A stretch of 64,000 bases of DNA. Source: Bugula neritina. Its lineage: Eukaryota; Animalia; Bryozoa. The translations under genes and the position numbers were made by a program. The stretch lies in assembly GCA_964035545.1 (NCBI GenBank), contig OZ037771.1, positions 2,305,628 through 2,369,627 of the forward strand. The letters are read 5' to 3'. Below, in pieces: positions 9,201 to 59,100 of the stretch. The notes below the pieces were generated by a model, which made no database searches, was not told the DNA's origin, and saw nothing but the letters and a program-made list of their open reading frames with translations. Each line of letters opens with the position of its first letter. Position 1 is the first letter of the stretch.

Positions 9201-12200
9201 TTTCAATTGACATAACTTTGACAAACAACTTGATAATAGAAAATACATGTTCCAGGCTTAACGGCATGTGTGGAGGATGTTGTTTCTTTAATAACGGCAG
9301 TAAAATAACTTAAACCACCTGCATGCTGTTTTACCTGGGTATCCAGCTTCTCCTTTATCTCCCTTGGGACCAACTGGGCTAGGGGAGCAAGGTCGGCCAT
9401 TAAGGCCAGGAATTCCGGAATCTCCCTTAGGTCCGTCTTGTCCTGGAAAACCTGGGAATCCTGGTTCTCCAATGGGTCCCACACGGCCCTCGTTTCCCTT
9501 AGGTCCGGGAGCACCAGGTATTCCTCCATCTCCCTTACCCTATTCAATATGCAAACTAAATTATTTCATAAATAAAAGTAAATAATGAATACTTCATAAT
9601 ATTATTATTTAAATTTTCAGCAACCTATAATGTAATGCTTTTTATACCAGTTGAGTCACAGCATAATTTAAGAAGAAAGAGCAACAGAAAATGTTAAAGT
9701 TGATTTAACTGTCACTGTAAAGTAGACACAACAAAGCAATCAGTGATCTGCCAACGAAGTGTACTTACACCTGGGTTTCCTGGTGGTCCTGGTAATCCAG
9801 GTCTACCAATTTCACCAGTCCTTCCTTCCATTCCTTTAAGACCAGGATATCCATCTCTACCACGATCTCCCTTCTCACCTACATTTCCTTTCATACCATC
9901 TTGCCCAGGTGCACCTGGGAAACCTCTTGGACCCTGAAGTTAATAACAAACATGAAGGATAAGACCAATTAGCTAACAAAAATATTTCAGTTGGGATAAA
10001 TACACTTTTATGGTACACACCGGCGGGCCGGCTCCTCCACGAACACCCTTTTCTCCCTTCATCCCAGTTTGACCTGAGTAGCCTGGTGGTCCATCAACTC
10101 CATCATCACCAGACAATCCAAATTCTCCTTTGTCTCCCTGAAAAAGAAAAGAAATTATCACTGAATAAACAAATACATTTAAACACCAACTATGAAAAAA
10201 TGGGGAAACAACATTTCCACAAACTTATTACAACTCCTATAACTAGCTTTAAATTGGAAACATATTTAACTGTATTCAACAGGTGATGTTTACCTTTGCA
10301 CCTGGCTCGCCTCTTGGCCCAGGTCGTGCTATAACAGTAGTAGGGCCATCAACTCCAGGGGTTTGAGCGGGTGGTCCAGGGGGTCCCGGAATACCTTTAC
10401 CTCCTTTTGCACCCTTCTGACCACGTAATCCTATACCCCTCTCTCCTTTCATACCTTTAGCTCCAGGTAAACCAAGGTTTCCCTTGTCTCCAGTAGATCC
10501 TGTGAAGATCAGACATAGACTGGTGTATTATACAGGTAGGTGAGAAGAAAGTTCAGCCTCGTAGTCAAAAGACTGACCTGCATTTTTATATTGCTTCACA
10601 TTTGAAATATATTGATGAAAAAAGAAACTATTCAAAATGTGGTTAATCTAAAAATTATTCCTAACAGAGAAAGATGTGCTAATTTACCATCAATCACTCA
10701 GGGAAAATGATTTACATGTAACACCATAAAGTGTTAAGTTGGCAGAAAAGCTACAGCATTAAGCATCCTTTAAAATAAATAAATAAATAAATAGAGGAAT
10801 CAAAAACTTACCAACAAGCCCCTGCACTCCCCGATCTCCATCTCTACCTGGCACCCCATCTCTACCTGGAGGTCCATCTCTACCGATAGGGCCTGGTTCA
10901 CCTTTGGCACCTTTAAAGTTTGTTGCAGAATCTCCTTTAGGTCCGGGTGCTCCAGGTGCACCACGTCGCCCTTCTTCTCCGGTTGAACCAGGGAACCCTT
11001 GTGGACCTGCAAACAGACAGAAAAGTGTCTTAAGTGTTATTATTATTTGTCATATGGTGAACCTACATTGGGCCATACTGTTATAAGGCGTTGCATAAAT
11101 ATGTAAAATATAGAAATAGGGAAGAAAACATTTGCTACAAACCTGGCTCTCCATCAGTGCCGTTACACCCATCAATACCAGGTAATCCCCTTGGCCCTGC
11201 AGATCCTGGTAACCCAGGAATTCCATTCAATCCAGGAAATCCCGGCATACCGGATTTTCCCTAAAAAAGAAACTTACACTAATCAACATTTACCTAATTA
11301 GTGTAGTATTAGACAAAGCTAATAGTCATTATAAAGCATAAGTTATTTTCAAATATTTCATTATCGTCAAAACATTTGTGAGAGTTTTACTCTGTACTTA
11401 TGATCTGTCGATGCATTCTGGAACATTCATCAGTGCATATGTATGTTCTGTCTTCTCTTAATATTTGGTTTTGATTCAGCTACACAGCAGTCTGTTTTTA
11501 CAACATTAAATATCAGTAATATGCGAAATAATCACAAGAAGTGCAGACAACTTCTAATTGAAGGTGGCATACAGATTTATAAACGCACCAGATTGCCCTT
11601 AATACCGGGAGCTCCATCTCTACCAGGTTCTCCTTTCACACCTTTAGGTCCAGGTAATCCTTCCACTCCCCGTGGTCCTCGCAAACCCTTTAAACCCTGA
11701 GGTCCCAATGCTCCAGGATAACCCTTCAAGTTAAATGAAATACAAACATGTGTGTCTCTGTCAAATTTAAACCAATAAAGGTTAGTATGAATTTTTTTTA
11801 AATATTCAAATAAAATCTTATCTTTATGCAAAGTTTAAAATAATAAAGTATTTCATAAAACAAAATGACAACTGGTAGAGAAAACTGAAACTGTTTTCTA
11901 TTGTTTTATTATATTTATTAACTATCAGTGGGTGAAAATAAACAAAACAACTACTATTTAAAATACAAATGCAAATATTATAGCATTAAACAGTATACAG
12001 TACCCACCCTATCTCCTTTCTCAGCTATGCATTTACAAGTACCACCATTGCTACAGTCAGCCCCGACACAGGGCTCTTCGGGCTGCACCTACAAATATAT
12101 TATTCCATATTTCGTCATATAGAAAAGCCTTCTATAAGTGTATGCAGACAGTTGGAAAAAAAATACTAAAAAACCTATTCAAGCAGTTTGGCAAAATAAT

Positions 12201-15200
12201 GCATTTTAATCTTTAAAAATGTTGGAAAAGTTAGTAAAATAGTTCTGTAATATAATAAAATGTGTTTTAATTCAGTGCTGTAGTAATCAATAAATCAATT
12301 AATAAATCAATAAATCAATAAAATCGGTTTATACATCTAGCAACATATTAAATATTCTAGGAAAACTTAGCTAATGACGGCTACATAACATATTCCTAAC
12401 CCTTGCGGGTGCAGCCATGTATTTTCTCTGCTTTGCAATTGAAGCATATAATCACGTACTGATGTTATATAAATTAATACCTCATGATTTGACATTGTGT
12501 TGAACCACGTAACATAAAAACCTGAGCATTCAGTATACTTGCTTTGATAACTTGTGAATGATAAACTGTACTTTGATTAATAATTAATCGCAGCCATCTA
12601 ATAAATTATCTGCACATGTAAAACAACTTCCCTCTATAAATGACCCTCCATTGTAGTGGGATAAACACCCTGTCAAACAGCTATTCTTGGGACAGACATG
12701 ATAAATTAGTCTGCCTAATTATATTTGGGCAACAGAAGCCCCTTAAGATCCACGTTTGTATAGTGATAAAAACCTGCAAGGCCCTGCTAAGGCATTTTAT
12801 TTAGCCTTAGAATAAGATGATGAGTATTAGAGAAAGGGGGGGGGGTCTATTACAGTGAAAACTATTGCAGGTTTACAGGTTGGAATTGTAAAAGGTAAGC
12901 AATTAGCTAATACATCTGGATTTTCTAAAATTAATGTGATGGATATAATTATCATATTAGCTATAAGAGGTAAGTGCAAAGCAATTTTTACATAAACACC
13001 CTTGAGGTACCTCTTTTGGCAAAAAGGCCAAGTCACAGAACCGTTGGTTTGGTATTTGGTTTAGAGAGCAATATACCAAATTTTTGAAATGTATATATGC
13101 ACAATTCCAGTATATTATATCCACAATATTTGTAGGTAAATTGGTAAGTAGGAATTTAGGACTTGAAGCTTGTGGGATATATTGTATATAAATACTCAAC
13201 TCCATGCTAACATTGCTAATACCCATTGAAAAGATGTACTCAAATAAATAACAGCAATGCAACTTGCACTAATAGCTGCCACAGTGTGAAGAAGTCAACT
13301 AACTTTACAAAAAAAATTAATCTTTATGTAGTTTGAAAGGGGAATTTTTTTATACACTCCTAATGAATCAGAAGCCCGGATAGAAAATGCCAAAAATTTT
13401 AACACCTTAGTTCATAGCCTGTAAAAATGGCATTAAATGCTATAGCTTGAGGACCAGGAAATCTATCTCACCAGTGCGAACTCAGCTTTAAGTCGGCTGT
13501 TTTCGGCACGATTGCTTCGGGCTGCTGATTCATAGTCTGCATCTGATAGAAAGCCATTCTGCCATTGGTCCAATATTTCTCTGTACATCTTCTCATTCTC
13601 TTCAATTTGTAATCTCAGCTGGGTTGCCTAGCAACATAGTAACACAAACCAATAAGATTGTTCCTTCGCAACATAACAGAAATCAATAAGATTGTTCCTA
13701 AGCAAACTAAAAACAGTAATCAATAAGATTGTTGCTTTACTTAACACCTATGATTTCACTGATAGATAAAAGTACAATTTGACTGAAAAGATTTCTATAG
13801 TACTTTGAGCAGAAATTTTAATTATGCTAAATTTAGTTTGATTAAAATTGATTGGGATGTTATAACAGAAAAGTTGTGAGTGAAAAAAATAGCCCATGGG
13901 TAAATAACAGAAAGCATGCGCAGCATTAGGGGTTGTAATGTTATAAAACCATGAAGCAGTAAAACAATTGCAAAAAACTGAAATCTATTGAAATAAATCA
14001 CAATTACAGTTGAACAAATGCATCGAAAAAGTGTTACAGAGGTATCTTTTAAATTGTTTTGGCACTAAAACCTTTGACTTGTATGAATACCTACTCAATA
14101 TGCTTAACTAATTCATTATCTTCAGTGAGCGACTTTTGTTCAACAGATAAGTGTGATTTGATAAATTAAATTATTATTTTAAAGTGTTAGTCACCACTAT
14201 TAAAATTTTGGAACATCTAAAATAACTAAAAATATCTAATAGAAATGCTATACAGTTTGTTTATACACAGAATCCTGTTGAGGAGTAAATGTTCCTACAA
14301 TAGAAGATATTCACATATTAAAGTCATTCTGTGTCAAATTAATTCCACAAATTATAAACTGTAAATGTTTCAATGTGTGCAACATAATGCAAAACACAAC
14401 TAATAGTTGAGAACAAAATATTTTCAAAAGGTACTTTAGGAGTTATCTTCTTTTTTAATTTTTAACCTGCTGAAACTTTAGTTGAAAACTCAACTTTGAA
14501 TAAATTCAGGAAACACTAAAATTAAACTAAAACAAGTCAACTGCATGTGACTGAACTCTTTCACTGACCAACATAACTTTTTACTAGTAGGAATATTGAG
14601 TTGAGCGAGAGTATTAAGTTTGAGTACTGAGTGAGAGTATCAGTTTGAGTACAGAGTGGGAGTATCAGTTTGAGTACTGAGTGGGAGTATCAATTTGAGT
14701 ACTGAGTGAGAGTATCAGTTTGAGTACTGAGTGGGAGTATCAGTTTGAGTACTGAGTGGGAGTATCAATTTGAGTACTGAGTGAGAGTATCAAGTTTGAG
14801 TACTGAGTGGGAGTATCAATTTGAGTACTGAGTGAGAGTATCAAGTTTGAGTACTGAGTGGGAGTATCAATTTGAGTATTGAGTGAGAGTATCAAGTTTG
14901 AGTGCAGAGTAAGAGTATCAGTTTGAGTACTGAGTGAGAGTATCAATTTGAGTACTGAGTAAGAGTATCAATTTGAGTACTGAGTGAGAGTATCAGTTTG
15001 AGTACTGAGTGAGAGTATCAATTTGAGTACTGAGTAAGAGTATTAGTTTGAGTGCAGAGTGGGAGTATCAAGTTTGAGTACTGAGTGATTTTTACCTGTT
15101 ATTATAGAAGGTTTCAAGAATTAAAATTTAGTAAAACCTGCTAAAAAAACTGAAAATATTTTAGACCAATTGAAAATTGTTCCTGCAAATGATTTCATTG

Positions 15201-18200
15201 AAAACATGAGCAGAAACTGCCTGCTTTAGTCTGCTAAACTTTAGTAGCAAAACTTCCCTCACCTGTTGTAGCATATAAACTTAACAAGTTGGAACCTTTA
15301 CAAAAATACTCCTAACAATTTAGCTAACAGATCTGTTGGGAAAGATAACTCCACAGGTTCAATAGATAGACAGATCATGCAAACTGTACAAATAAAAACA
15401 AGCAGACGAACAGACATACAGACAACTAGACAGTCAGGTAGGTAGGTATACAGAGTGATAGAATAGATACAGAATGATAAAGTAATCAAGGATTTAACCA
15501 ATTTAAATAACATTCAGACAGATAGACAAGCAAATAGACAAACCTAAAGCTATGGAAAACTAAAGCAATGTATTCTTATTACATAGAATTAAACTATCGT
15601 AACTCATAAGCGCACAAGACTGGTGCAAAAACTAATCACAATGTAGCTTTACAAAAATGTAATTTAGAAGTTGTGTTCTTTTACCCGTTGCTGATTTGCA
15701 GTGGTTTGTATAGCATCAGATACTATTCCAGCTTGTGCAGTGGAAATCTACAATTGAGAGTTATATTATTATAGGTTTAAATTAGTCAAGAAAAACAGTG
15801 TAAGTTGGGGGAGGGTGTGGAGAGGACGGTGGCGTCATTAGAATAACTACATGTAGATAGATGAAGTTTACCAAAGCAGTAAAAATAGATAAAGTATATA
15901 AGACAAGGAGCCTGTATCTTGTAGTAAATTAGATGGTATAACATGACATTTTAAAAGCAGGTGAAGAATGCAATACCTCTGGTCGCGAAATAACTGCATG
16001 TAATGTCAGCAGCCCCATTTGAGTTAGCTATTTATATCATATTTCATTCTTGAGAATATCATGACAGTATAGATTTCAAGACTCAATGAAATTGACTATG
16101 AACTACTGGGGTATTTTGTAAAAAATGTGTATGAGCTGGAATTTACAACCCTTCTAATGTTTATGATACTAATTGGAACCAGGCTGTTAGGGCAAGCAAC
16201 AAACAGCAGCATTGTTTAATTCATTCATCCTGTGTAATTAGCTTTCAAGGGCTGCTCTGAAAGATTGAAAATCAAACAGGTTTCTATGCTTTTACAGCAA
16301 ACTCTAGCCGGCTACAACACAAGCTCGCATTACAAAAAATATGGTAGTTTTTATTAACATATGATAGAACGAACTAATGATTAGCCCTAAATCCTAACAG
16401 ACTAGAAACATAGTCTGCATTACTCTATAATGTACTGAAAGGCATAAGGGCCAAAGGCTTTCTGTATATACAAAAAGATTTCCGCACTCTGCAAAGAATT
16501 ATTTAGTAGTTATGCACGTTTAATGGGCAGTTACTAGCCAAGACGTAACAGTATGCCCTTTTTATAGCTTTCAGAAGAGATATTATGGAATATTCTAGTT
16601 CCTACTATAGCTGTGTATAGCAGAGTAGTCGTAAGGAGTAGAGTGTATATTCATACAGTTAGTCTGACTAAGTGTTTATAGAGAAACTTGCAGTGTTGTT
16701 AACCTAAACAGAGAACAAGGTCTAAGAAAACATAGCTTGTGCTACTAGGCTTTGCTGGTAAATGTTGGCAAACCTGTCTACTATCATATATATAAAAAAG
16801 CTATGAAACTGCACACTCCACAGCAGTTCACACCACACAGGCTAAGTAAAGCATGGACCTACTATCACATAAAGTTCAATTAAGCTAATCTCAAATATTT
16901 TTGCAGGTAAAGGACATCTCAAACTAAGTTAGAATTTATTTCATAATATAACACTTTCTAATGGCTACTGTTGCTCCTCAAAGTTTTAGTTTAAAAACTA
17001 GCAAATTTCTCAAACAGTATAATACTTATAGTAGCTAGAAATTTATTTAGAACTAAAGTACAACAAATGTTTGATTTACCAGTGTAATTCGGGCTTCATA
17101 CAGAGCCGTCTTCACTGCATCCTCCCATGATAACCCATAATTTTTAGCAGTTTGCTGCAGGAAGATGACATCATTGTTGCTATAGTAACCACTAGCAGAA
17201 GCTAGAGGGAGCCGATAGCCAGGGGGCAGTTTCTGCAAGGAGGTCTGGTAACCGATGGAGGAGTTCCTATACTCTCTTCTCCATTCATCTAGCAGATAGT
17301 TTACATCAGCAGCTGTCGCTATTCTCTAAGAAGAATATACAATTTATTATCTAGAATACTGGCACTGAGGCTTATAATACTGGCACTGAGGCTTATAATA
17401 CTGGCACTGAGGCTATTCTTCATTCTATGACTTTATGGTTTCACTCAAAATGTTTGATTGGCAGCTGGTTAGTTGTCAGTTTAAACTTTAGGCAAGCAGA
17501 AAAAGCAGTCTGGGTTTTTATCAAAATAAAATAGCTCTAAAAATCATAAATTAATTGAGAATACCAGCAGAAGCGTACCATAGGTTAGCAAGATTACACA
17601 AGAAAAGGAGAGACCAGACAACAGTAACAATATTATATAACCAATTGAAGGGTGAGAATTGGATTATTAGAATCTAAAGTAGTTTATCACAAACCTGCAT
17701 GAGGTGATTATCAAGCTTAGCAATGGCTTCCTGCTGAGCCGCAATCTTACTGCGCAGGTCCTGGCTGTTAGTACTAGGGTCCTCCAAATTAGTGTAGGCA
17801 GAGATAAGATTTCCATCATGGATTATGTACCGTGCCTGCAGATCCTTGATGTACGCCGATACCACAACAGCTGGTGCATCGGCCATGTACAGGACTGTAG
17901 AAGTTGTCTTCTCAGTAGTGTTGGTAGTGTTAGATATAGTTGTTAGTTTAGTGGGGTGGTACTTATCTAAACCCTCATGCTTGTCGGTGGGTAATGTAGA
18001 AGGTAGGTCTAGAAAATTCTGACTTTTAGCCTGTAAGAGGCCAATGCATTATGAGAAACAAACTAGAATAATGCTATGAGATAATAGAATACTGGATGAT
18101 AAACCAGCATTAGCAAACCCAGTTAGGCAATGCCAACATGCAAACCCCAAGCCCAAAGCAGAAAAAAAATCGATTAGTAACAAATTGAAACCTTAACAAG

Positions 18201-29400: not shown

Positions 29401-32400
29401 AACCCGGACCTAAAGGGAAGCTCATTGAAAGCTCTGAACCACCAGAGGAGGTGCTTGGAGAAAAAGGTGTGTTCATTTTGCACAGTTCTCTCATTCAAAC
29501 TTCTGTGAACAGCTTTATGATACTCGAGTTTGTATAACCTGTTGAGTTTGTATAAACTGTTGAGTTTGTATAATCTGTTGAGTTTGTATAACCTGTTGAG
29601 TTTGTATAACCTGTGAGAGTTTGTATGATCTGTTGAGTTTATATAACCTGTTGAGTTTGTATAACCTGTGAGGGTTTGTATGATCTGTTGAGTTTGTATA
29701 ACTTTGAAGTCTGTTTAAAATGAAATATATCTTCAATATAATATTTCAAGTTCCTCCATTTCTAGGTGGTTTACTAAAATCTTTCTGTTTAAATTGGGAG
29801 AATTCATAAATGTTTTCAAATCCTCAATGTTTGGTTGGCTGACTGAGTTGTGGCATGAGATATTTTGGTTCAATGTCTCTAATAATTTCTATAGTTTGAC
29901 TGGTTTAGTATTTCTTAAGAGTTGTCACATCTCAACAACTTTTGTTACAGGTCAGCCCGGTTTTAAAGGTATGCGCGGCATGCCTGGAGATAAAGGTTTC
30001 AGAGGGCGAGATGGACAGAGAGGCCTGGATGGTACCACAGGGCTGAAAGGTATGCTTGTTCACACTTCTCTGTCAGGTTAACTTGCTGATAATATTCAGC
30101 ATTTCCTTGAAATAACCTGGTGTTTGGATTTGTCTTTTCATGTTTGTAAGACTTAATTTATTGTTATTGATAACTTTTGACTATAAAAACAAAATTCAAT
30201 TACTTGTGTTTAAGGTTTATAAGATTATTTTCTCAGCACCATCAAGCTGCATCTATAATCCAGTTTTGCAGTAAATTGTCTATCAAATAAATAATGGTTG
30301 ATAATTTGCATAGACCCAAATTGTTAGTACTGTATTCCAATAACATAACAATTATACAATATGTCTATTTAAATTTATAAATTACCAGTTAAGCCTAATA
30401 TAAATTTATAGCTTTATACTAGTTGATGTGCTAGTATAGTACTGACAGTCACAGTAGTAGTATAGTACTGGTGGTCACAGTAGTATAGTACTGACAGTCA
30501 CAGTAGTAGTATAGTACTGACAGTCACAGTAGTAGTATAGTACTGGCAGTCACAGTAGCAGTATAGTACTGACAGTCACAGTAGTAGTATAGTACTGACA
30601 GTCACAGTAGTAGTATAGTACTGACAGTCACAGTAGTAGTATAGTACTGACAGTCACAGTAGTAGTATAGTACTGGCAGTCACAGTAGTAGTATAGTACT
30701 GGCAGTCACAGTAGCAGTATAGTACTGACAGTCACAGTAGTAGCATAGTACTGACAGTCACAGTAGTAGTATAATACTGACAGTTACAGTAGCAGTATAA
30801 TACCGACAGTCACAGTAATAGTATAGTGCTCACTCATTCAACTCACAGAAATCAAATACTGACCATAGCATTAATACTTGGCAGCTGAAAAAACTTAAGT
30901 TGTCCGCACTTGAAGTTGTCCATAATTACATAATAATTACTTATTACATGCCGTGGTGTAGTTACATGCTTCCAAGAGAGGAAAACTCTAGCTGAGCTAG
31001 TGGTCTATAGAATATCATGTCATAAAATACAAAGTCACATTTTAACTCAAACTTGGTATGATTTTTCTACAGAACACTAGTTCAACTAGAGTTTTCTTCT
31101 CTCTGAAGCTTGTAACTAAACCATTGCATGACATGATTAGGTGATTAGCATGTAACTATAGGTAGTGTGGTCTCTCCCCTTTTCCATGCACACAGTGAAT
31201 CAACAATGTTTCAGTTCATGACTGATTGTGTTACAGCCAAATGGGGAACTTCTCTCTACTAATCTGATTCAGTTGACTGACTGTTTTCTGCATGTGATAC
31301 AGACAATAATCATGGTCATGGTGTACAGTGCCACTGGTTAACATTGTTAGACTATTTAGGTTTTACGACTTGTACCAACTTTACCTTCCATGCCGTTAAA
31401 TCAACATAGATGTAGCCTAATTGGCACCATAACTGGAACCAATAAATATTATATTATTGTGATATACCATCATTAAGTTATATTATTATTATAATTCTTA
31501 TTATATCTTATTACATGATACCATTAAGTAGGTAGGACTTTACTTTTATATTGCTAAACAGCATAAGTAGTGTTGTTGATCAACAGGTATATGTGTGAGT
31601 GTGCGTATACTCAGGATATTGGTATGAATTGCATACAAAACTGTGTCCATAGTTGTTCAAAGAAAAATATATTTAGTCTGTGGTCCATAGTTTTATTAAA
31701 ATTCAATGACTTGAATGTGAAAACTTTACAGTTTACCCCCTATTCACACTTACCGTACCGTACGCCGTAACAGCAAATTTTAGCGATTTTTGTTAACATC
31801 CGGGCTAAATCGTACTCCGGTTTACGTTTAGGCGTTGATCAAGCAGTGCTTGATTCAAAAAATCACGGCGGGCTCCTATTGGGTAGAGTTGATCTGGTAC
31901 TAAAATTTAAAGAACATTTTCGCTAGTTTATTTTAATCGCTTATTTTTGATTTAATTTAATCAATTCAAAAGTTTTAAAAGATTAAAAAATCTTTATCCG
32001 GCTTGTTTGAATTAAACTTAGCTTAAAAATCTAGCTTTCCCTAATTACAAAATCAAGCAAACCAAAAACTTAAAAATGATTTGGACGGCTTAAATATTCA
32101 TTATTTAAATTAGTTTGCACAATTATTTTAAAAACGAATATATTTAAAAAAAAAGATTCTTTTCATGTAATTGCTTTTATTTAGTAAATAGCATTTATAT
32201 AACATCTTTTGATAAGAATGTTGCGAATAAGTTGTAAATAATATTCAAAGGCGTTCAAATCACCGCAGACAAGAGTTGGCTTTATTATGATTGGTCACAG
32301 CTCAACGTCATGCATTGTACTTTTACGGCAATGTGTGAACACCCGTTGACAAAATGCAACAGCGTCGCCATTTTATTTTTGCTGTTACGGCGTACGATAC

Positions 32401-35400
32401 GGTAAGTGTGAATGAGGGGTTAGCCTGTGATCTTTAACAGTGGACAGTGATAAAAGTAAACCCAATACTATGGTGTGCAGCATGAGCAGTATTATTCAGG
32501 TCTGTAAATTACAACATAGTGTTAAGAAAATATGATACTATTGTAATAAAAGTGATATAATATTATAATAGAATAAAAATGAAGAATAAAAATATTTGAT
32601 TTTAAAGCAGCTTCATCTGAATGAATGAATGTTGTAAAATAAATAAATACCATCGTAGTAATTATACCATGACAAATAAAATTCAATATAAAAAAGTCTT
32701 TGTTTATGGTAGTAGACTGGCTCTAAGTTTATAAAAGAAGGAGCTGGAAAAATAGAAGCATATTTGAATTTACTTTATGTTAACATATCTATTACAATTC
32801 CAATGCAAGTGATTCAGATTGTGAGCATTTTATGCTGCCTTCTAAAGGGGATATTATGATATCACTGTTCAGGGTATTAGGAAACCATATCATGTAGTCT
32901 CAGTTCTGTTTAGTCTCCTCCACATCCACCACCACCACTATCTCCCCCTCCACCACTACTTCCCCCTCCACATCCACCACTATCTCCCCCTCCAAAGAAG
33001 CTGTGTCCACCACTGCTCCAATACCCTCCACTTGATGTATTTCCACCTGTTGGTATATCAACACAAATGATTAAAACCCAACCAAGAAATAAATACTAGA
33101 AAAGCTGTTACTGTAATATGAACAACTGACAATAGATTGAATAATAGGGAAATAGCTATTATCAGTATCAATGCCACATGTACTTCAGCTGCAACTATGG
33201 TTAATTGTCAGACAAAAGTTTTTTTAAGAAAATGATAAAGTTTGTACAATGAAAGGTTAAACAGTTGAATATTAATATGACTGTGATAGTAAATTATAAG
33301 GGAAAGGTGAAGGAGGTAGAAGCATACCGTAGGTTTTCTTTTTGGTTCGTGCTCCACTGCTGTGAGTTCTAGATTTTCCAGCTGTAACAATTATAAAGTT
33401 GCATTTGCTGAAACAAGTACTGGGTTTCAGTTTAAGTGCACCCCTTTATAGTTTTACTGAAACTCATTGAAATTATATTTATGCCGAAGCTTACTTTCTA
33501 ATAGTGAAATATGACTCGCCTAATTGGATGACATTTGAAAACGTTATGAATCTGTAGTCAACAGTGAAGAATTATTTCAAATGAAATCAGACATATTTAT
33601 AAAAATTATAAAAAATCTCTCGAATTGCTGCAGCTTTATTTAAAGAGTTTGGGTCAGCCATTTGTTCTACAAGCTAGTAATTAAATGTCCATGTTACAAG
33701 GATTATCAGTATTATTTTGAGAGTTATCAAAAGCTAACAGTTTTGACTGATAGCTTTTAGAATGCAAGGCAACCCGAGAAATTGTTACCTTGGCTAATTC
33801 GAATTTTTGGCTGAGAATCGTGAAGGTATAAAGGTACCATCAGTAAGACATGTATGTAATAAGTAATTCATAAGTAGCAAGATGAAACTGCTTCTTATTG
33901 TAGCTTTAATAACATATAGGTAGGTATGTATCTTATTTGAAGCAGTTTTCTACTCTTATCTATATCACTGTAGTTCAGAAATTAATTATTTATATGTTTA
34001 TTCAATAAAAGGCAAAGTCACCACAATATAAATGACTAGTATAACTAACGTCAGCATAATATACTCATTGTGATAAACAGTAGCTGAAGTTTTTTAACTT
34101 ACAATTTGAGGACGTGTTTCCCATGACTTTTTCAGAGATTTTCTCCTGGTAAATCTATCTCCTTATTTAAAATAAACTATATCTTGCCTGAAAAGACTAG
34201 AATTTTAATCAGATACGAGTGGTTGCTGCTTCGGTTGTTGTGTTGTTTGTGTATGCCTGCGAGTGTATCCCCTGGATATTTATAGTAAATACTATTTCCT
34301 CCAAAGTGTAGGAAAATTCCTATTGTTGGGGATTCCCCGTTATTCACCATCAACATAAAATTATTCATTACAACATTTCGTCACTTATTGCGTAACATAT
34401 ATGCGCGCACAACGTTTTGTGCGCTAGCACTCTTTGAGGTTCAGTCAGTCGTATTATTCAATGGGAATAACCTATCGTCCCGGTTATCAGTTGCAACTAG
34501 CAATGCTGGAGACTTTATCAATTTCATTGAAAATAACTATGATGATTTCATTCGACACTTGAATGAAATATAAAAGAAATTTTGAATAGATTGTGATTCA
34601 ATCTTGCACAAAAATGATACTTTGAAATTATACAGCATAAAATTCCTATCCAGTTCTTGAAGGATGTTGTGAAAAAGCATTGCATGACGAGTCTAACAAT
34701 CTTATTATTTGTGCTTGACTAGGTTAGCAAATTGCACTGGGAAACAGCTTCATCACATGCTCATTGTAAACTATTGCCATAGATTGATAAATGATGATAA
34801 TCATACAAACTTGAAGTCATAAATTTGCTGTTTAGAATTGCCACTGAATTTTGTATTCAACACAGATCATAAAATTGATGCATTTTTAGTGAAAGCAACT
34901 TTTGAATGAATTTTAGCACATTGTTGATGCATACCTAAGGTGGATTTTTAATTAAGTACCTAGTTTTAATATTATTTATAATGTTATTTTCAGGATGGCA
35001 GACAAACATGATATATTATCATACTAGTTATGATCATTCTAAACTGGTAGTATTGGAAAGTCAAGCAAGCATTTTGTATTTACTATACATCTGTTTTGCG
35101 TCAATTCTTTACTGTATACTTTCAAAGAAAGTAATATATTATAGACCCCTCCACTCTAACAACATCTGCTATAGTTACTATACTATATATCTGCTATAGT
35201 TACTATACTATATATCTGCTATAGTTACTATACTATATATCTGCTATAGTTACTATACTATATATCTGCTATAGTTACTATACTATATATCTGTTATAGT
35301 TACTATACTATAATATATCTGTTATAGCTACTATACTATATATCTGTTATAGTTACTATACTATAATATATCTGTTATAGCTACTATAACTACTATGTAT

Positions 35401-38400
35401 ACTATAAAAACAAAGAGAACTAAACTGGGAAAACTAGAATGATGGGTGTTATATTCTCTTGTAGTTTTACATTCATTTTCTATATAATAGAAATTATCAA
35501 CTAAATGTATTATTTCTAGACCATGTTTTCACAATTGTGACTTTTCAAAGTTTGCGTAAGTGATGCAATATGCCAAGTATGGTCTCAATTTATAAATTCC
35601 AGTATCAAATTGTAGCTAAATGATTTTATTTATGAAAAAATTAGTTAAAGTTTCTAGTTGATTGTTACAGTCATTTTAAAAATTGTTACATAATTAGTTA
35701 ATTAACATAAAAGCATTTAGATGTTTTAGTATAAAATTTTCTTTACATAATAGTCTGTTAGCTGGAAATGCATAAAAAAAACAAAAAAATGAGAAATTTG
35801 ATCTTAAAAATGGAGAATGCAGTGGATAAATGTTACATACAAAAATTATAAAACATTATTGGTGGCTCATTTACTTCTGTAAGTCATATTGTAAATAATA
35901 TAATAAAAAGTCTGCCATTAACACCGCTACATTCCCCCTCCGCCACATCCGCCACCCCCTCCGCCACCTCCGCCACCTCCGCCACCATCCCCACCCCCTC
36001 CACATCCACCTCCTCCAAATCCACCTCCTCCAAATCCGCCTCCTCCAAATCCACCTCCTCCAAATCCACCTCCTCCAGCTCTCCTGAAGTGATTGTGCCC
36101 TCTGTTAGCTTTCTTCGCTCTACCACTGTTAGATTTTCTTGCTGTGAGAAATAAACACAGGCAGTTGTGAATAACTGAATAATCTAATCTAGCAGCCATT
36201 TCTTGATGACATCATCTAAAGAGTTTGCTTATCAATTCTTATATTGGAATTAAAATGTACATTTATAGGAGTTGTCCTCCTTTGCTACGTGTAATTCACA
36301 AATTGCTATTTGCGCATCTAAAATAAAACATAGTTACTGTAGTTTTTGATGATGAAAATAACTTTATACAAAAGCTTTATGTTCATATTACTTTGAATAT
36401 TTCACTTACAAGTTGAAGTTGTGTTCCCCATGATGTCTATTCAATGTGAATCCAGTAAATATATAGCGAGAGATGGTGAGAGATCTCTGTGACTATAGTT
36501 TTAGTTGTGTGTTTCTACTGTTGCCACTGACGTACTGTATGTAGACATAGGTGCTTGCATCCGTTATATAGTATCCATTATTTCCTGGCTATCGGGAAAC
36601 ACCGCTTCCACCTGAGGAACTTTTTACTATTGAATGCATTGTGAACAAGATACCTGTACATGCTGGTGCTAGGTGATTGCCAGTAAATGACCTTGTTATG
36701 TAATTAGTGGAATGTTGAATTATATAAATGTATTTATAAGTTGTGAGTCATGTAATCTACTGAGTGGCAGTTATACCAGGATATACTTTAATATAGCAGC
36801 AAGTACTATGAACAGGGAGTGCATATGCAATATTACAACACAATGATACAATACAATGCAATATAATATGTGTGTGCATTTGTATGTATTCAATATATTC
36901 TACTAATTACTTTCTATAAGCTAGAAGCATACAAAATTTCAAGTTCACTTCAAGCTGTGTTTAGAAATTTTTTTCAAAGTCTTTGTCTGCATAAAATTGT
37001 CATTGGTTGTAAAGTTGTGATTTATTTCCCCTGGCATTAACCTGGCGGAGCAAATAAACAACATTTTAAACAATTTTAAAAATGTGTAGTTTACACGGTG
37101 AAATAAAATGCTCATCATGATTTCCAGTCATGAAATAACTGCACATGATTTGTCTACTCTATAATGTGCTGCCGCAGTCTGTCAACTGCTGCCGCAGTCT
37201 GTCAACTGCTGCCGTGCAGATTTAGTTTGAAACTTTTTAACTTATCTCTTTGTCGTTTCTAAACTCTGTAGGAAGCAAAGGAGATTTTGGTCCTCTTGGA
37301 GTTGAGGGTAAAACTGGTAGGTCTGGTTTTGACGGCCGTCCTGGCACTAAAGGTCAACCTGGCGAGAAGGGAACTTCTGGTGAAGATGGATTTGATGGTA
37401 TTCCTGGTGACAAGGGTGAACCTGGTATACAAGGCCCTCAAGGTAAATGTAACTTGCATAATGTTAAATGTATAGCAACAATTATGTTTTGAAAACGTTA
37501 AAAATAGTTATGAAGGTAAGTACTTCATTCTGGACTAGTTTTTGCTGGTTTTTATACTTACTCAATAATAGAATTTTATGATGCCAAAAAATAATCTGTT
37601 TTTTCGAGAATTGTAAATATTGTCATAGAAGATTGTATTGAAGCTGTTAGGTAGTATCACCACATGGATACTATTTTATGAATGCAGGTGTACAAGGGGA
37701 AAGGGGGCCTGATGGGAAATTTATACCTTTTCTAAAGGGTATAAGCGGCTTGCCTGGAGTTCCCGGTAGACAAGGTTTGTTTTCTCTTTGTTTACTTATA
37801 ACTAATTGGCAGACAACACAGCAGTAATAATACTGTGCATTAACTTCTGCTCCAACAGTTGTCCAGTTAGGTATTCTAGCAGGCTCTATTCCAGTTCAGC
37901 CATTTTCTTTTATTAACAAATAATTTCTCATGACAGTAAAAATATATTCTAGAATTTGTGTTGGCCAGTAGTTTCTGTGATACTTTGCGGTTCAGTAATT
38001 TAACCAAATTTTGTGGTTGAATTACTTTTTATAGTTTTGTAGGAATTTAATTTCATTAAATAATTGAATGAAGTAGCTCGCTGACGATATTGTAGCTCAT
38101 TGCGTGTCTGAACTCGAAACTCTTGTAGTGTAGAAACCTACTGCTGCTTATATTGTTTATTTGTCATGTGTGCAGGGCCAATGGGAGATACTGGAGCTAA
38201 AGGAGCCCCAGGTCCAGTGGGAATTCCCGGTCAAGATGGGAATAAAGGTGCCAAGGGTGTTCCTGGAGAACCAGGTTTACCTGGTATACGCAGTCCTGTT
38301 AGAAGGTCTCCCAAAGGTGAGTCTAGTTTTTTTAATTTCACTCAAAAGTCAGTGAAACTTTTACAGTTTTAGGTTAGCTACTTATAAATATAGACTACTC

Positions 38401-41400
38401 ACAACACTCGACTATTCAACATTTTCGATTTTAGTCATGGATTCAATTATATCACTTTTAATTCTACACAATGTGGAAAAGCCGAGGCTAAACGTGAATA
38501 TCCCTTCAGTTGTTTATTAGAGCATTTCCTGTTGAATTAAGGAATATGTGAGCAAGCTGTTCTCAGTTATAACTTCTATTTGTGGCCCAATGAGGGTTCA
38601 AGAATAAAACTATTTTCCAGGTGACCGAGGTGATAATGGTCTTAGCGGTGCAGATGGTAGACCGGGTGTTCCAGGACTACCTGGAGAACGAGGTATGCCA
38701 GGAAATAGAGGGGAGACTGGTGACACGGTGTTTGGAGAGCCGGGTGTTGATGGTAGAGACGGAAGACCAGGTGTTGGAGGGTAAGTAGTAATTACTAGAA
38801 CACTGGAATCAAAGCGGCGAACAACTATATATATAGATATACTTTAGATATTCATACAGTAGGCAAGTTTAAGGAAACATTGACTAACTATTATCATATA
38901 TACAGTGCTGTGAAAAAGTTTAAGGACGCCTCCCTGTTTTCTATAATAGCAATGTTCCAGGCTAATTTTAAGACATAACTAAAGCATTTCCATAGGCATG
39001 GTGCTTATCAAAATGATCCTTAAGATCTCCTTAACTCATTCATATAAATTATAAGTGTCTCTTTTTACATCCTCCAAAAATTAGGGTAAAACAATGACAT
39101 ACTATGCATATATGGGAATTATTCAATGTTCTCACAATTTGTGTGTACTGTAGGACATCAGAATATTTTACTTGAAACATAGAAAAATATTATATGTAAA
39201 TTGTTATACACCTTATAGCAGCATTGCAACACACAGTGCTTTAAATTTTAGTATCAATATTTTGTTGGCCAGCCTATATTCTTAATCGCAAGTCGGCAGC
39301 GACGAGGCATCGACTTGTACAGCTTCTCCAACTCGTTTTCAGTCACGACATGATGCCATGCATGAATTACAAGCTCTATGAGTGTCACCTTAGTTGTTGA
39401 CTTCTGTGAAGAGACTATTTTAGCCATTCTTGACCATGAATTTCTTATTGGGTTCAAGTCCCGGCTTTGTGCTGGCCAGTTAAGCGTTGAGACCCTCTGC
39501 TTTTTTAACCACTTTTTAACTGTTTTTGCCCAATGGCATGGTGCATTGTCATCTTCAAATATGTTAATTTCATTTAAAAAGAAGTTTTTTATGATTGGAA
39601 GAAGTTTAGCATTGAGATTCTCTATATATTTTTGAGCATGATTAACATCATTCCAAAGCAACTACTGAGTCCGGCTACACTTTTTGATGTTATACAACCC
39701 CAGAACATAACACCGATAGGGTGCTTAATTGTTCGAAGAATACATTAGGGGTTATATTTCTCATACTGGTACCTTTTAACACAACAGTTTCCATCATGAT
39801 TCTTTACATTAAATATGGATTCATCTGAAAAAATTACTTTTTTTCTAATCATTCACTGTCTAATTACCAGGCTCCCTGGCCCACCGTAACTGGCTTTTTT
39901 GCTGCTTCTCGGTTGGTTGAGGCTTCCTCTTGCTTTGCGGCCATGTAAACCATGGCTCAGCAATCTTGCCTTATCAGGGATGACGAAGCTGGTGTTCCTG
40001 TTGATTCTGACTATTCTTTGCCTACTCAAGACTTGTTTTATGGCAATCTTTCTTGCTCATCCCAATGAGAACCTTGTCATCTCTAGGTGTGCTTATTTTT
40101 GGTCGGCCATTTTTAGGTCCATCTGCTACACTACCAGTGTCCATAAACTTCTTAATAATTTGATGTACAGTTGTCTTTACTTTGCTAACCTTTTCAGATA
40201 TTTTCCTAATTGAATAACCTTCTTTGTGCAAGAAAATTATTACAAACTTTGCCTCTGAAGGAAGATTTACAGCTCTCATTTAGTCTATGCGCAGCGCCCA
40301 AGTAGACACCATGTAAAAGCTCACAACTAAATGACATATTTCAAATTATAAAAGGAAGTCATACTTTATGATATCATGATGCCATGCACAAAGTCAAATT
40401 TCCCTATTTAGCCTTTTGTGGTTATAAAAGTTGATAAACTTTGGTTACATAAAAATACAGGAGTTGCGCTTCCCTAGCTGCTTGTGCAGTTGGCCCAAAA
40501 ATGGGTAGAAAACATCACAACAGCAAAAGTTTAAAAGATGGAAATTGTAGAGCACATTCTAAGGGTCATTTTGATATATAGAACTTGCAGGAAAATATTA
40601 AGAACTTACAAGAAATGCCTATTAAACAAGATACATAGAAATTTCTGCAAGCGTCCTTAAACTTTTTCACATCACTGTACTATACTCTGTGTGCATTTCA
40701 GCTGTTTGATTGCCTAATGCCTAACTTTATGGTTCATGTCTTGTTATGGCTCTTTGAATTCGAATGGTGTAGTTTTTTATTTATTTATAGTGAGAATTCA
40801 CAAAGTATTTATAATTAGGTTAAATGCTATTAGATTACAACTCTTGTGTACGTATAGACTATTATATCAGCTGCCTTATGTTGTTTATAGTATTGTGAAT
40901 AAGCTATATTGAACATAGAACATGCTACTAGGTTGAGTCATAAAGAGAGAATCAAGAACAACATGTACATATGTAGCCTTTTCTCTTAAAGCTTTTAGTA
41001 GCTTTTTTCTGAAAGCTTTTTATGGCTTTTTATTTTAAAGCCAGTATATCAACAATGCTATAATACAACATTGTTCATCAAAGAAGTGTCATCAGTTTTT
41101 TCAGCGAAACTTTTAGTGATCTCTTGAACTGTTGTGAACACTAATTGGTTGTAGAATACGCGGTAACCGTGGAGACAAGGGAGTGAAGGGTATTAAGGGC
41201 CGGGATGGTATATACATTGGTACACAGTCTAGGGTGGGGCCCAAGGGAGAGCCCGGCGACCAGGGAGGCGTTGGATATGATGGGGGTCCAGGAGCGAGAG
41301 GCTATCCAGGTATGTTCCTTTCATCACCTTTGTCCTATTCTACCACACTTTCCCATTTAGCTCAATGACAAAGTCCCTTGGTGTTCAATCTATTCTCAGG

Positions 41401-50400: not shown

Positions 50401-53400
50401 TTATACATATTATTACATGTTTCAAGTGTCATTTATGTTTCTAGAAATTTTCCATCATTTTTTGAAAAAATTTTTTGCGTTCAATTGTGAATTATTTACA
50501 AACATTAAATGTTATGCAAAGACAGTTTTTAAATCAACTCTAACAGTTTTAATCCTCTTGAAACGCACTATCTTTAAAAAATACTATATTCACTGGCTTT
50601 TTAGGACAAGTGGGTGATGCTGGTGAACCCGGACCCCCCGGTCCTAAAGGATTCAAAGGAATAAAAGGACTGCCGGGAGATCCAGCACGCAATGGACTAC
50701 CAGGACCTCCTGGTGATCCAGGCCTGGACGGTCCGAATGGTAGAGATGTGAGTATATAGTGGATGCTTGAAGACTTTGGTTACAATTTTGGTGGAACATT
50801 GATATGATCAAATAATATTTACATAATACCCAGCTCCTGTGATCTCTCTTCAATATTTGTGTTTAATAAAGAGTTATCCTTCCTTGGATAAATATCACTC
50901 AGCGAGATGACAACTCTCAAGTTTCAAAGCTCATTTCACCTTTCTATAGATTCTGATTCAGAGAGTCCTAAATAGAGTCACGGCAACTGGGCCTCGGAAT
51001 GTGGCAGTGGCAGCAGCTAACAATTCTGTACGGGATAGCATTGCTTATTTCTTATTCTTTTTATTTTATTTTAAGTAACTGAATCCTGTTTTTCAGGGAT
51101 TATTTGGAGTAGAAGGATCTCCTGGTCAGAAAGGTGAACAAGGAAACCCTGGTCCAAAAGGCTATCCAGGAGTTAAAGGAGAACCAGGAGATTCTGGACG
51201 TTCAGGTTATCCCGGTATTAAAGGTGCAGATGGTCTTGATGGTAAGTTGAAGATTTTAAACAAGGGAGCTGCAAAACTGATATAGTTTTACGCTAAATTT
51301 GAACTTTAACAGAATGAAGCTGGTAATAATTTTGATTGAAAGTTTCAAGTTTTGTGTTAAATAACTAACTTGTAGCATTGTGTGTGCACCAGGTCTGAAA
51401 GGTCAAAAAGGTGAAAAGGGAGAGAGAGCAACTCTAGGTAGTAGCACACCACTCAATGAGAAGGGTGTACCTGGCAAACCTGGACTGCCTGGTCTACCAG
51501 GTCCTAGAGGGAATAATGGTCTAAAAGGACTAGACGGGCTTCCAGGAGTAAAAGGCATAGCATCATTTATATTCTTTCCAACAAGTTTTAATGCTATTTA
51601 GTTTACTTTCTTCGAGCTGTATATTAGAAACCTGTTGCACTTTGAGCCACATCTTCGGAATAATTCACCAAGCCTGGTTTTCTTAGTACTTCTGCCTTTT
51701 GGATTTAAATGTTTTTTTTAATGTTAAAAGCTCACATTTTGATGGTTAGTTTAAATGTACATATTATTTGTCAGTGTATACCACACTGTGAATAATAAAT
51801 AAGAAGATATGATTAATTGAAAATTAGGCAAAGTTTTACTAATAAAACTTGTGTTAATAAATTAAGCAAATATTGAATTATGTTGCATGTCATAACATTT
51901 CATTTGTTTTTAAAAAAGTGTAATTTTTTCTACTTTATATCATGCAGGAGAAAAAGGATATCCGGGTATTGCTGGTAGAGATGGATTCCCAGGTTCAAAG
52001 GGTGAAAAGGGAGACAAGGGAGTTCGTGGCAAAGATGGCTTGCAAGGTTTGGAAGGGTTACCTGGATTAGATGGTTTACCAGGAAGTGCTGGGCCTCCTG
52101 GAGGTCATGCTGGAATGTTAATCACCAGGTGAATGCTGTACTCTGCAAGCCAACTTAACCTTTTCAAATGACTTGCTTTAATGTGGCATTGCTATCTGTT
52201 TTATTTCTCTGCCAACCTCATTATCACTTGGTACTGTAACAGTTTGAAATTATGGTCAAATCAGATTTCGTTAAATATGGTAAATATTTTTATGATTGGT
52301 TGCTTTAAATCTTACTTCAATGTTGATTTTATTAAATTGCAGTTTTATTGATTTGGCTTTTGGTTTATTGTGTGAACTACTCTTTGCGCAATCTGTTCTA
52401 TAAGGAATACTATCAACGTCAGCAACAAGTAAAACTACTATTATAACTTACATCACAAGTTGTGCTGCAGGCACAGCCAAGCCACCTCAGTACCCACATG
52501 CCCTGCGGGAACTACCAAGTTGTGGAGTGGATATTCGCTACTCTATACTCAAGGAAATGGCTATACACACGGACAGGATCTTGGTGAGATAAGGCTCCTT
52601 TATCAAAGCCACACTTAGGAACATTTGAAGTAATCATAGAGTTAAAGAAGCCATTCTACTTGATATTTATGTTTTGTTGATTTGTTGTTCAGGTGACAGT
52701 GGCAGTTGTTTGAGGAAGTTTAGCGTGATGCCATTTATGTTCTGTAATATTAACGAGAGGTGTACGGTAGCCAGCCGCAATGATTACTCATATTGGCTTT
52801 CTACTGAGGAGCCAATGGCTGCTATGAAGAATCCAGTGAGAGGACCAACTATTGGTGAGGACATGCAGTACTCTGTGCTGCTTTGTATTGTGTAGTAGTA
52901 GTAGCAGGAAATTCAACAGACTGGTATAAAAATAAGACTTGATAACTCTGACAAGTAAAGTACTTGGATAATGTGGGCTTAAATTATGTTACTTTGAAAG
53001 ATAAAAATGGCAAAATAAGGTGCTGTAAGATGATTGTTGAATTTCACATCATTACATGCTCTTAAATAACTTTACCCTGCTATATCTTATCATATATCGT
53101 ATCGTATAATACTATTCATTGAACTGAAGTTCATATTTTTGTATTAAACATTCCAGATTTCAGAACTTTGATAATGAAAGTGATTTATGGCAGTTGACCT
53201 TTGTGTGAAATTGTTGCCATTCAAACTTTTCATCTCTTCAGTTTTCATGTATATACTAATCATACAATATGAATATATTAATGCTTTCTGTTTTTCTTTC
53301 GTAATTGAAATAGTCCACAATCCTCTAAGTGTTGAATTGAGTATTAGAGCTAACCAGTGCAGACAGCTATTAAGTGTGAAGAGATGAAGCAATGTACTAT

Positions 53401-56175: not shown

Positions 56176-59100
56176 TTAAACAGGAGAGCCTTGATTGACT
56201 GTTATATCCAGCTGACTACAGAACTCATCAAAATCTTTTAGTTCATTCTCAAAAAGGTCAAGGTTGAGTTGCTCGAGTGTCTCAGAAATTGTCTCCCCGG
56301 TGTTTAGCAATACTAAATCTTCTTTCCGGTGAAACTTTTTGTAAAATCTGCCTATATCGTGTTCCACAGTAGGGACTGCAAACGGCATTTTCTAAAAGAA
56401 AAGTCATAAGTCACTACGTCATCACCTGGCACGTTAAAAATGTAGTCAAGAGTAGCTAAGCTACAAAGCTGCGACATTTTACTCAAGTAAATGTGTTTTA
56501 TAGCTTAGATTTCCAGTAATTTCCACAAATATTATTGAATGATACGGTAACCTTACTGAGACGTTTAAAAATGCTCTACCTTAAAATATAATTTTATTAC
56601 ATTTCATGTTGTTGTTACTTTTTTTTCTACTTTGAATCTACCATACAAAGTGTTTTTCTATGACAAAGCAAAATTAAATTAATTCATAAAAAGCAGTAGA
56701 CAGTAAACTAGATTAAACAATGGAATCTAGAATCTTCCCCCATTCAAAACTGTTCCATATCATTAGAAAGTTTGATATTCACTATGCATGCGTGTGTGCA
56801 TCCGAAAATATACAGCAAGAGGCATAGTAATAGTTTTGACAATTAATTGTACATAAGATTAAACAATACTTTAAAGACAACAGATTGTATGATGTTCACA
56901 TTTCACAGTGATCCAAACACTGTAGGTTGAAATTAGTACAAGTTTTAAGCTGTCTAATGATAGTAAAGTGCAGTAGACCATTACACATGGTCAGTGAATT
57001 TAAGAGACTTACAACATCAACTAGTATGAAGTCGTCAGCTGGTTTCTTGTACTGCTCCATGAATTCTGGATCGTCAAACAGAGATGTAGAGAAATCTTTT
57101 GTATGCGTCTGGCAAGAGAGAACAACTCAGTGAAAACATGACAATCAGGTAAAGGCAAGTAGTAGTTGTGAAAAATTACACACACACATGTTACACTCTA
57201 CTCACAATAGCGTAGTGATAGAAGTAACTAGTAATAGTACTTACTGGTAATAGTACTCACTAGTAACTAGTACTCACTAGGAAGCTAGTAATAGTACTCA
57301 CTAGTAACTAGTACTCACTAGTAGCTAGTAATAGTACTCACTAGTAACTAGTACTCACTAGTAACTAGTAATAGTACTCACCGACACATCTGGCGAGTGC
57401 GGAGGAAAGAGGGCGTCAGCATCACCAGTTTGCTCAGCTTGCTCCATGAGAATAGAGAACGGTACTTCCTCTTCTAGACTCACCTGACTGGCTCTTCGAG
57501 GAGCAAATGCGAAGCCATTACTCCGCCGCAGTTTGTCTGGTGTACTGGAAGTCAACAAGTGGAGATAATCAGTAACTCCTAATAGTACTAACACTGAGAC
57601 TACTATTTGTACTAGTTCACTTTATGACTCATAATTGTCTTAATACTAACCACTGCTACCGACTAGACCAATAACGCCAATTATAACAAACATACAAACA
57701 TGTGTAAATAAATAAATATATATAATAGTATAATATAATATAGCAATACACACTCACCTAACTCTGTGTGGAGAACTTGAAGAGTCAGGGTCATCGCTGC
57801 TGCTTAAGGGTTCATTCAACACGCTGCCGAGAGATTTGGGTAGAGGTTTACGAGGACTGTTGCTGGGGTGATGAACTATCTCATAGTCTGTAGGTGGTGT
57901 GCTGCTGCATGAGTGTCTACCGTCAGCAACGTCCTCGTCAGTCCACACTGGTCTGCAGTTGTATGGAACACAGGTTATAACAGCGAATGGTAAAAGCTGT
58001 TGAAATTAAAAAGAATTACAAAACATTTTTAGAGTTGATTCAAGAATTATTTGAGGATTTCCTAAGATAGAATTTGAGTTGGACTCGTAATGATAACAGT
58101 TTTGCTTACGAGTGAGCAAAACTCGCTCTGCTTGGCACCACAAAAGGGGTTTTCTCGGTGCTGAAGTAATTTTCCCTAACATCCATATGCTGATAGCTGT
58201 TGGTGGGAGAGAAAAGGAGTTTTGCCCTACAAGAGTTAGTAAAAGTGAACGTAAGGTGCTAAGTATTTACTATTCAAGCTGCACGAACCCACACTTGTAT
58301 CGACGATGTAATCAATCAATAAGTAGCAACTAACACAAAAACTAGCCTAAACTACCACCGCCATACATTACAGCAATCACATAACTTAGGTTACAACAGA
58401 AAAATATGTAATCAGTTAAAAGCACTGAAATACATAAACAACTCAGTTGGCTAAACCATCGGGTTACAGCTTTTCCCTGATGCAATTTATTATTCATGAA
58501 AAACAAGATAGCAAAGAAGTTGAGATAGAATTTTTAGTGAATTGATTAATTGCCATTACACCTGGACAAAAGGCACAAGAGAGTCTTACAAAAGACTGCA
58601 CTGCATGCTACATGCATACCTGCAATGCACCCCCAGCCTCACTGTGCCTAGCGGAGTGACTGATGAGCCGATATGGGTATGGGTGGGGCCGTTGAAGGAG
58701 TCGCCCATCTCTGAGAGCTCTGGAGGGCCATGGTAGAGTCTGTAGCATATGACAAACGTATCGGATCTCTGGTTACGAGCCAAATAGTAGCCGTTCTTGT
58801 CTCGGGTCATGCAGATTAGAGATCGCAGGAGTCGAGTTAGTCGCTGGTATACTTTATACGACACCTGGAATACAGGATACAGAGAATGCGTAAACAAGTT
58901 GCTTAATTTCTACATGTATAGAAGAAAACACAATTGCTGTAATATAGAAACATCAGTTGTTTTCAATGTGAAGGTGTTTGCCATAATACTCTGTTCTGTA
59001 TTAAGGAGGGGACAAATCCTGAAATAGATGCTGTATACTGAGTTGGAACATAGATATGAATGCAATGGTGGTCAATGATGAGAAATACTAGATGTAGACA

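Follow-up and report, generated by a model that had tools for sequence, protein, structure and literature searches.

Two antisense genes nested in a type IV collagen intron of Bugula neritina are predicted to encode myristoylated, glycine-rich micropeptides

A large intron of a type IV collagen gene of the bryozoan Bugula neritina harbours, on the opposite strand, two small spliced genes, here called A and B, which are very probably both functional and would code for micropeptides uniting an N-myristoylation motif, a basic segment and a glycine-rich tail. They lie within a 64,000-nucleotide (nt) stretch of genomic DNA, hereafter the window (assembly GCA_964035545.1, contig OZ037771.1, positions 2,305,628 to 2,369,627 of the forward strand). 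Our preferred interpretation, held tentatively with a probability of about 0.38, is that A and B may be Rel-inducible, myristoylated, disordered cationic peptides that line membranes in a defence or wound response; it is an interpretation by analogy, favoured because the tail resembles leaderless barrier proteins and the basic part resembles cationic antimicrobial peptides that are intrinsically disordered (CIDAMPs).

The anatomy of the two genes is confirmed in the sequence (table 1; positions are those of the window). A first-pass annotation, made by a model from the sequence alone, had proposed two spliced genes on the minus strand, and the junctions it named (36410>36141, 34103>33381 and 33328>33046) yield models that translate cleanly, giving 78 amino acids from two coding exons for A and 70 from three for B. 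Both first exons are exactly as it described them, 22 nt long and ending in a T followed by gtaagt, with the coding sequence MGNTTST in A and MGNTSSN in B. When splice sites were ranked within the host intron by matrices trained on the host collagen exons, the donor of gene A took rank 6 and those of exons 1 and 2 of gene B ranks 5 and 3 among 400 GT sites, all three within the top 1.5%, while among 417 AG sites the acceptor of gene A ranked 8th and the first acceptor of gene B 16th; the second acceptor of gene B is the sole AG that opens the glycine-rich frame from its start. Each gene has a strong Kozak context, and farther than 22 nt past the beginning of the TATA no upstream ATG occurs. 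One DNA run, probably from the source sample, gave contigs that match both genes with zero variants in the coding exons.

Table 1. Features of genes A and B and of their host intron (window positions)
Feature	Position	Strand	Remarks
Host intron 11, type IV collagen gene	30050..37271	+	exon map
Gene A, kB-like site	36594..36603	-	9/10 match to GGGRNNYYCC, 33-24 nt before TATA; weak, predicted
Gene A, core promoter	36564..36586	-	AGGAAATA element + TATA (starts 36570); shared with gene B
Gene A, coding exon 1	36410..36431	-	MGNTTST + 1 nt; 22 nt; strong Kozak; myristoylation motif
Gene A, intron	36142..36409	-	268 nt; GT-AG; phase 1
Gene A, coding exon 2	35927..36141	-	basic segment, four GGGGF repeats, Gly tail, two Cys, stop
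Gene A, candidate poly(A) signal	35625..35630	-	AATAAA, ~300 nt past stop; predicted
Gene B, C/EBP-type site	34387..34396	-	consensus from established knowledge
Gene B, kB site 1	34328..34338	+	exact H2-type 11-mer GGGGATTCCCC; matches H2 probe
Gene B, kB site 2	34311..34320	-	GGAATTTTCC; 36-27 nt before TATA
Gene B, core promoter	34278..34300	-	AGGAAATA element + TATA (starts 34284); shared with gene A
Gene B, coding exon 1	34103..34124	-	MGNTSSN + 1 nt; 22 nt; strong Kozak
Gene B, intron 1	33382..34102	-	721 nt; interspersed-repeat remnant at about 33400-33830
Gene B, coding exon 2	33328..33381	-	basic segment, 6 Lys/Arg in residues 10-23
Gene B, intron 2	33047..33327	-	281 nt; phase 1; weak acceptor
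Gene B, coding exon 3	32910..33046	-	second GNTSS, Tyr/Trp/Phe-dotted Gly/Ser tail, two Cys, stop

The kinship of A and B is visible in those parts of the sequence that would matter for function. Their DNA is alike beyond shuffled sequences (p<=0.001) in exon 1 and again in the acceptor with the start of exon 2, whereas introns, 5' and 3' untranslated regions and the wider promoter stay at shuffle level. Conservation is of the coding type: exon 1 retains G2, N3, T4 and S6, differs in two amino acids and has altered third positions in codons 2, 4 and 5, and the variation within the Gly tails falls mostly on third codon positions (codon entropy at positions 1/2/3 of 0.68/0.62/1.75 in A, whose tail includes a 15-nt tandem repeat, and 1.48/1.08/1.77 in B), their Gly codons being mixed and GGA-rich where other Gly repeats of the genome are nearly pure GGT. 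Because the similarity is confined to exons, splice sites and core promoter, it points to a duplication of some age, after which the functional parts stayed under constraint; A and B look like old paralogues, and it is plausible that they duplicated inside the intron. The earlier contention that exon phase and promoter layout had been kept holds in part, for intron 1, beyond which B has an extra intron, and for the 16 nt upstream of the TATA, of which 12 are identical between A and B, a level that did not recur when other TATA-like sites were compared (414 comparisons). In whole-genome scans of the 216-Mb animal assembly (35% GC), the exon-1 pattern occurs at two places only, A and B themselves, with zero control matches, so that the genome-wide pattern search once suggested for this family adds no further paralogue; nor did pattern, protein or DNA searches of the genome find a third copy. 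Other genomic GGCGG matches belong to GGT microsatellites, larger genes or contaminant contigs.

The encoded peptides, with predicted masses of 6.4-6.6 kDa, carry in both translations the basic segment, the aromatic-dotted Gly tail and the two Cys in GGCGG context (C54 and C73 in A, C51 and C67 in B) that had been read from the sequence at first pass. Product A contains 56% Gly and 76% disorder-promoting residues, with an isoelectric point of 11.5 and a net charge of +7; product B contains 39% Gly, 21% Ser and 70% disorder-promoting residues, with an isoelectric point of 9.2 and a net charge of +3, the first 30 residues having +6 plus two His. The basic stretches (in A, 8 Lys/Arg in residues 9-28) include no acidic residue and are studded with S/T-x-K/R sites of the protein kinase C (PKC) type, at 7, 8 and 13 in A and at 8 and 20 in B. 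As had been stated, a signal peptide is missing: the best 9-residue hydropathy is 0.31 in A and -0.04 in B, with no signal-peptide or transmembrane stretch. Both N-termini, MGNTTS and MGNTSS, combine Gly2 and Ser6 with neither Pro nor an aromatic residue at position 3, as N-myristoyltransferase (NMT) substrates require (Ser, Thr or Cys being accepted at position 6), and they conform to the working consensus MGxxxS/T (bioRxiv 2025.03.14.642691; PMC4692089), as the annotation had claimed. Myristoylation of Gly2 and membrane tethering would follow from these features. AMPK beta subunits and cyclin Y, which are myristoylated, have these same N-termini; myristate alone confers weak membrane binding, a second signal coming from a basic patch. 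In gene B the GNTSS of the N-terminus recurs at residues 27-31 (33044-33030, minus strand), right where exon 3 begins (P=0.0012 by shuffles); it may be what is left of an internal duplication, or else a second site for acylation that cleavage would lay open.

The promoter of gene B, with its predicted kB and C/EBP sites, is the strongest functional clue that the sequence offers, and its motifs exceed chance. Its kB 11-mer is that of the H2 probe used for NF-kB in electrophoretic mobility shift assays (PMC2193891), and for a pair of kB sites within 300 nt of the TATA dinucleotide shuffles give P=2e-4; a feature of NF-kB targets, consensus kB sites near the core promoter, is thus present in gene B as predicted sites. 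The pair pattern is matched 29 times in the genome, at about 20 loci, with zero in the control and 0.36 expected from composition; many are ends of miniature inverted-repeat transposable elements (MITEs) or tandem repeats, and a few are unique. That the kB sites of gene B are a repeat remnant can be rejected, because its promoter is single-copy in the genome. Two genes with a Rel domain are present in the assembly. The combination of a kB site with a TATA, found 82 times genome-wide against 49 in the control and often in repeats, is uninformative alone, a third strict kB match close by, at 38219, falls in coding sequence of the collagen, and a sigma-70 promoter scan is irrelevant for animal DNA. 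Elsewhere in the genome, a repeat family with hAT-MITE-like ends bears paired kB-like sites (loci L075, L084, L085, L095 and L098) and may account for some of the surplus of the kB 11-mer; a unique kB cluster lies among exons of a TRIM-like gene (L078), three kB sites precede TATA-like words at a CCCH zinc-finger locus (L079), and two kB sites with a TATA form a unique instance at C6:15570282 (L089).

How would such peptides work? The two genes, each with its own TATA promoter, would yield micropeptides from which the initial Met is removed before NMT acylates Gly2; myristate and the unbroken basic segment would then bring them to the cytoplasmic face of acidic membranes, while the disordered Gly/aromatic/Cys tail would project and self-associate by Gly-loop contacts, contacts like those of low-complexity aromatic-rich kinked segments (LARKS), or disulfides. 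Gene B, and perhaps A, would be turned on by Rel/NF-kB with C/EBP upon infection or wounding, so that the peptides might form a quickly made membrane-lining layer of defence or barrier, comparable to the epidermal proteins loricrin, late cornified envelope (LCE) and hornerin, which have no leader, with a cationic disordered part able to act on microbes. Transcription, induction and an effector role of A and B are deduced here from sequence features.

Comparison with known systems places A and B outside MARCKS, FAST, secreted Gly-rich antimicrobial peptides (AMPs), loricrin/LCE and GRDP/TIGR04222 proteins, because each time a defining feature fails. Loricrin and LCE proteins, which do without a leader, are disordered, rich in Gly, Ser and Cys, and assemble beneath the cell membrane (PMC8348711). 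A and B are likewise leaderless, disordered and Gly/Ser-rich, with scattered aromatics and Cys, the sub-membrane site being a proposed analogy; unlike them, they have no Gln, hence no Gln/Lys transglutaminase termini, and no homology was found. To our knowledge, loricrin and LCE are specific to vertebrates and do not bear an N-myristoyl motif. N-myristoylation or palmitoylation boosts killing by the Gly/Ser/His/Arg-rich disordered CIDAMPs, and fragments of hornerin and LCE are antimicrobial (PMC6399351). With CIDAMPs the two products share a cationic, Gly/Ser/His/Arg-rich composition with few order-promoting residues; CIDAMPs are released by proteolysis from large skin proteins and were N-lipidated synthetically, whereas here the whole product would be acylated by NMT. 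The first-pass statement that Gly-rich peptides normally carry signal peptides and these do not is right for A and B, and too general in view of leaderless loricrin, LCE and hornerin (PMC8348711, PMC6399351).

Anchors of the MARCKS, BASP1 and Src SH4 kind have in common with A and B the MGxxxS motif, nearby basic residues and PKC-like sites; A and B lack their acidic rod, MH2, effector domain and catalytic cargo, and the cargo is instead the Gly/Cys tail. The invertebrate Gly-rich AMPs acanthoscurrin, ctenidin, holotricin-3 and armadillidin have signal peptides and often C-terminal amidation; A and B are similarly small, cationic and 39-56% Gly with aromatic-Gly repeats, and differ from these secreted peptides in lacking a hydrophobic leader. 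C-terminal Gly runs with interspersed Cys are found in GRDP-like and TIGR04222 proteins, which the GGCGG tails of A and B recall, larger genes with such tails being present elsewhere in the assembly; in A and B no globular domain precedes the tail. The FAST/sORF2 fusogens (63-107 amino acids; bioRxiv 2025.03.14.642691) also join MGxxxS/T to a polybasic region, with a defining transmembrane helix that A and B lack. By this analogy, A and B would behave like myristate-plus-basic anchors bearing a loricrin-like tail. A thiazole precursor of the microcin B17 type was considered and dropped, no sign of a modifying enzyme having come up, though none was searched for.

Homologue searches were run exon by exon, the joined models serving only for local translation, composition and one score calibration. 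Pfam and NCBIfam gave zero matches for A and B, and the tails correspond to no enzyme or binding fold recognisable in them; PDB hits were Gly linkers only, the best values in the ESM Atlas (0.80-0.81) are at chance level, and no relative was found in viral contigs. A scan of metagenomes for exon 1 gave 16 matches, and the 14 examined (all except L046 and L061, from human gut) lacked the donor and Gly tail, as expected of chance. These searches are weak for low-complexity sequence: a self-match would score E 3e-20 and 4e-11, enough for a nearly identical protein to have shown up, and A and B miss each other under correction for compositional bias, so that diverged relatives would be missed too. 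The blank thus means no close match in the collections and is not proof of lineage specificity. The claim of an undescribed family stands for two paralogues lacking a detectable homologue and is to be restricted to two genes in one genome. Among the matches made by GGCGG tails, locus L045 (C3:10108000-10117999) holds a convergent pair of larger paralogous genes with long tails of this kind, which we take to be GRDP-like; their last exon has no Pfam or NCBIfam match. Two contigs, C36 (L041) and C115 (L073), have telomere-like CCCCAA repeats and TAA/TAG apparently read as Gln, and are probably ciliate contamination of the assembly; a gene on C36 has an apparent MGCC start and an apparent GGCGG tail at its end.

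Several other explanations have to be weighed. The loci might be no genes at all, only decayed pseudogenes, or G-rich mini- or microsatellites in which an ATG and splice-like words arose by chance; the 15-nt repeat in the tail of A, a looser exon-1 pattern that alone is at chance level (6 genome-wide matches against 9 in the control) and one weak acceptor speak for this, and low language-model recognition (1253 and 1305) is uninformative either way. We regard this explanation as very improbable, because 2.3 kb apart on the same strand lie two independent cases, each with TATA, Kozak ATG, 22-nt exon, top-ranked donor and in-frame tail, whose similarity is limited to functional parts and whose variation sits at third codon positions. 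If they are genes, the peptides could be constitutive or developmental structural components of a cuticle-forming or budding epithelium, the kB-like sites being incidental or belonging to another gene. Loricrin-like Gly/Ser/Cys composition (PMC8348711), TATA promoters and the frequency of kB 11-mers in the genome agree with such a role, which is made distinctly unlikely by the small chance of finding two kB sites and a C/EBP site right before the TATA of a single-copy promoter.

A role in signalling is a further alternative. Modulators resembling MARCKS or BASP1 would use the myristate and a Ser/Thr-studded basic patch to sequester acidic lipids or calmodulin until phosphorylation releases them, possibly as a Rel-induced feedback regulator, with the Gly tail as a flexible or condensate-forming spacer. 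PKC-like sites inside the basic patch of both products and the missing signal peptide are in line with it, as are known acylated signalling microproteins such as the 76-residue CLMB (PMC13143143); we consider it unlikely, as about 60% of the chain consists of Gly, Ser, aromatics and Cys with no recognisable binding motif. MARCKS-type proteins, moreover, are rods of acidic character with a single, dense basic effector domain. The peptides could also be gene-encoded antimicrobial lipopeptides, cationic disordered killers made by NMT that act inside phagosomes or once vesicles or cell lysis have set them free. Their composition fits CIDAMPs, which lipidation boosts, the promoter has kB and C/EBP sites, and cleavage behind the basic stretch could turn the internal GNTSS at residue 27 of B, itself beyond chance, into a new acylatable N-terminus. 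This possibility is quite improbable, given that it offers no export route, that CIDAMP activity was measured at pH 5.5 and low salt, unlike seawater or cytosol, and that just two copies are seen where AMP families usually expand. Its fullest form, in which NF-kB-induced, disordered cationic micropeptides lacking a leader would be made natural antimicrobial lipopeptides by the animal's own NMT, as a ribosomal counterpart of synthetic myristoyl-CIDAMPs, and in which the internal GNTSS repeat of gene B might give rise to a second fragment open to acylation, seems very doubtful.

The preferred reading of A and B as inducible membrane-lining defence peptides has its own difficulties, and the following observations weigh against it. 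No homologue of A or B was found in a set of 5.8 billion proteins or in 1.84 billion representatives, and no orthologous intron was reached through the neighbouring collagen exon. The second acceptor of gene B, the least secure part of the predicted gene model, ranks only 200th among 417, near the bottom of the range seen in the collagen, and as protein sequences the basic segments of A and B show no significant similarity (p=0.17). Thr5 of A lies outside the set allowed by one review (PMC4692089), and CIDAMP activity is reported to need a net charge of +4, above the +3 of B, though A has +7. On the regulatory side, the pair pattern was fitted post hoc to the site of gene B, the kB 11-mer has 219 genomic copies against about 13 expected, partly in repeats or MITE ends, and gene A has only its 9/10 kB site, at nearly the same TATA distance as in B.

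The host intron, correctly described at first pass as intron 11 of 7.2 kb and by far the largest, is the 11th of an exon map modelled from the signal-peptide exon at 20480; its 7,222 nt are about three times the next largest gaps (about 2.1-2.4 kb), and Rfam has zero matches within it. The C4 (NC1) domain PF01413 of the collagen IV part of the window is at 52674-52892. Two type IV collagen genes stand head to head, at 283-18030 (minus) and 20480-53000 (plus), and the vertebrate COL4A1/A2 pair has a head-to-head arrangement. Antisense nesting inside a collagen intron is probably ordinary, and no functional link of the peptides to collagen IV was found in this analysis. Just downstream of gene B lies a high-copy MITE (31735-32420) with 43-nt terminal inverted repeats, in which the first AATAAA past the stop of gene B (~32376) is situated. 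Pieces of a Tc1/mariner-type transposase (HTH and DDE_3 domains) occupy 39254-40279 (minus) within a collagen intron, and exons at 57358-60113 (minus) resemble the autophagy gene ATG13, for which Pfam gave no confirmation.

The value of these genes is limited for now to two genes in one genome. If expressed, they would give products of 70-78 amino acids that escape standard annotation and homology search, and would join a lipid anchor to a basic patch and a low-complexity Gly/Cys tail under a promoter of inflammatory type. In a group of animals with hardly any effector described, they would then be candidate effectors of immunity or wound response, and would allow a test of whether disordered peptides that are lipidated and have no leader form a natural class of defence molecules.

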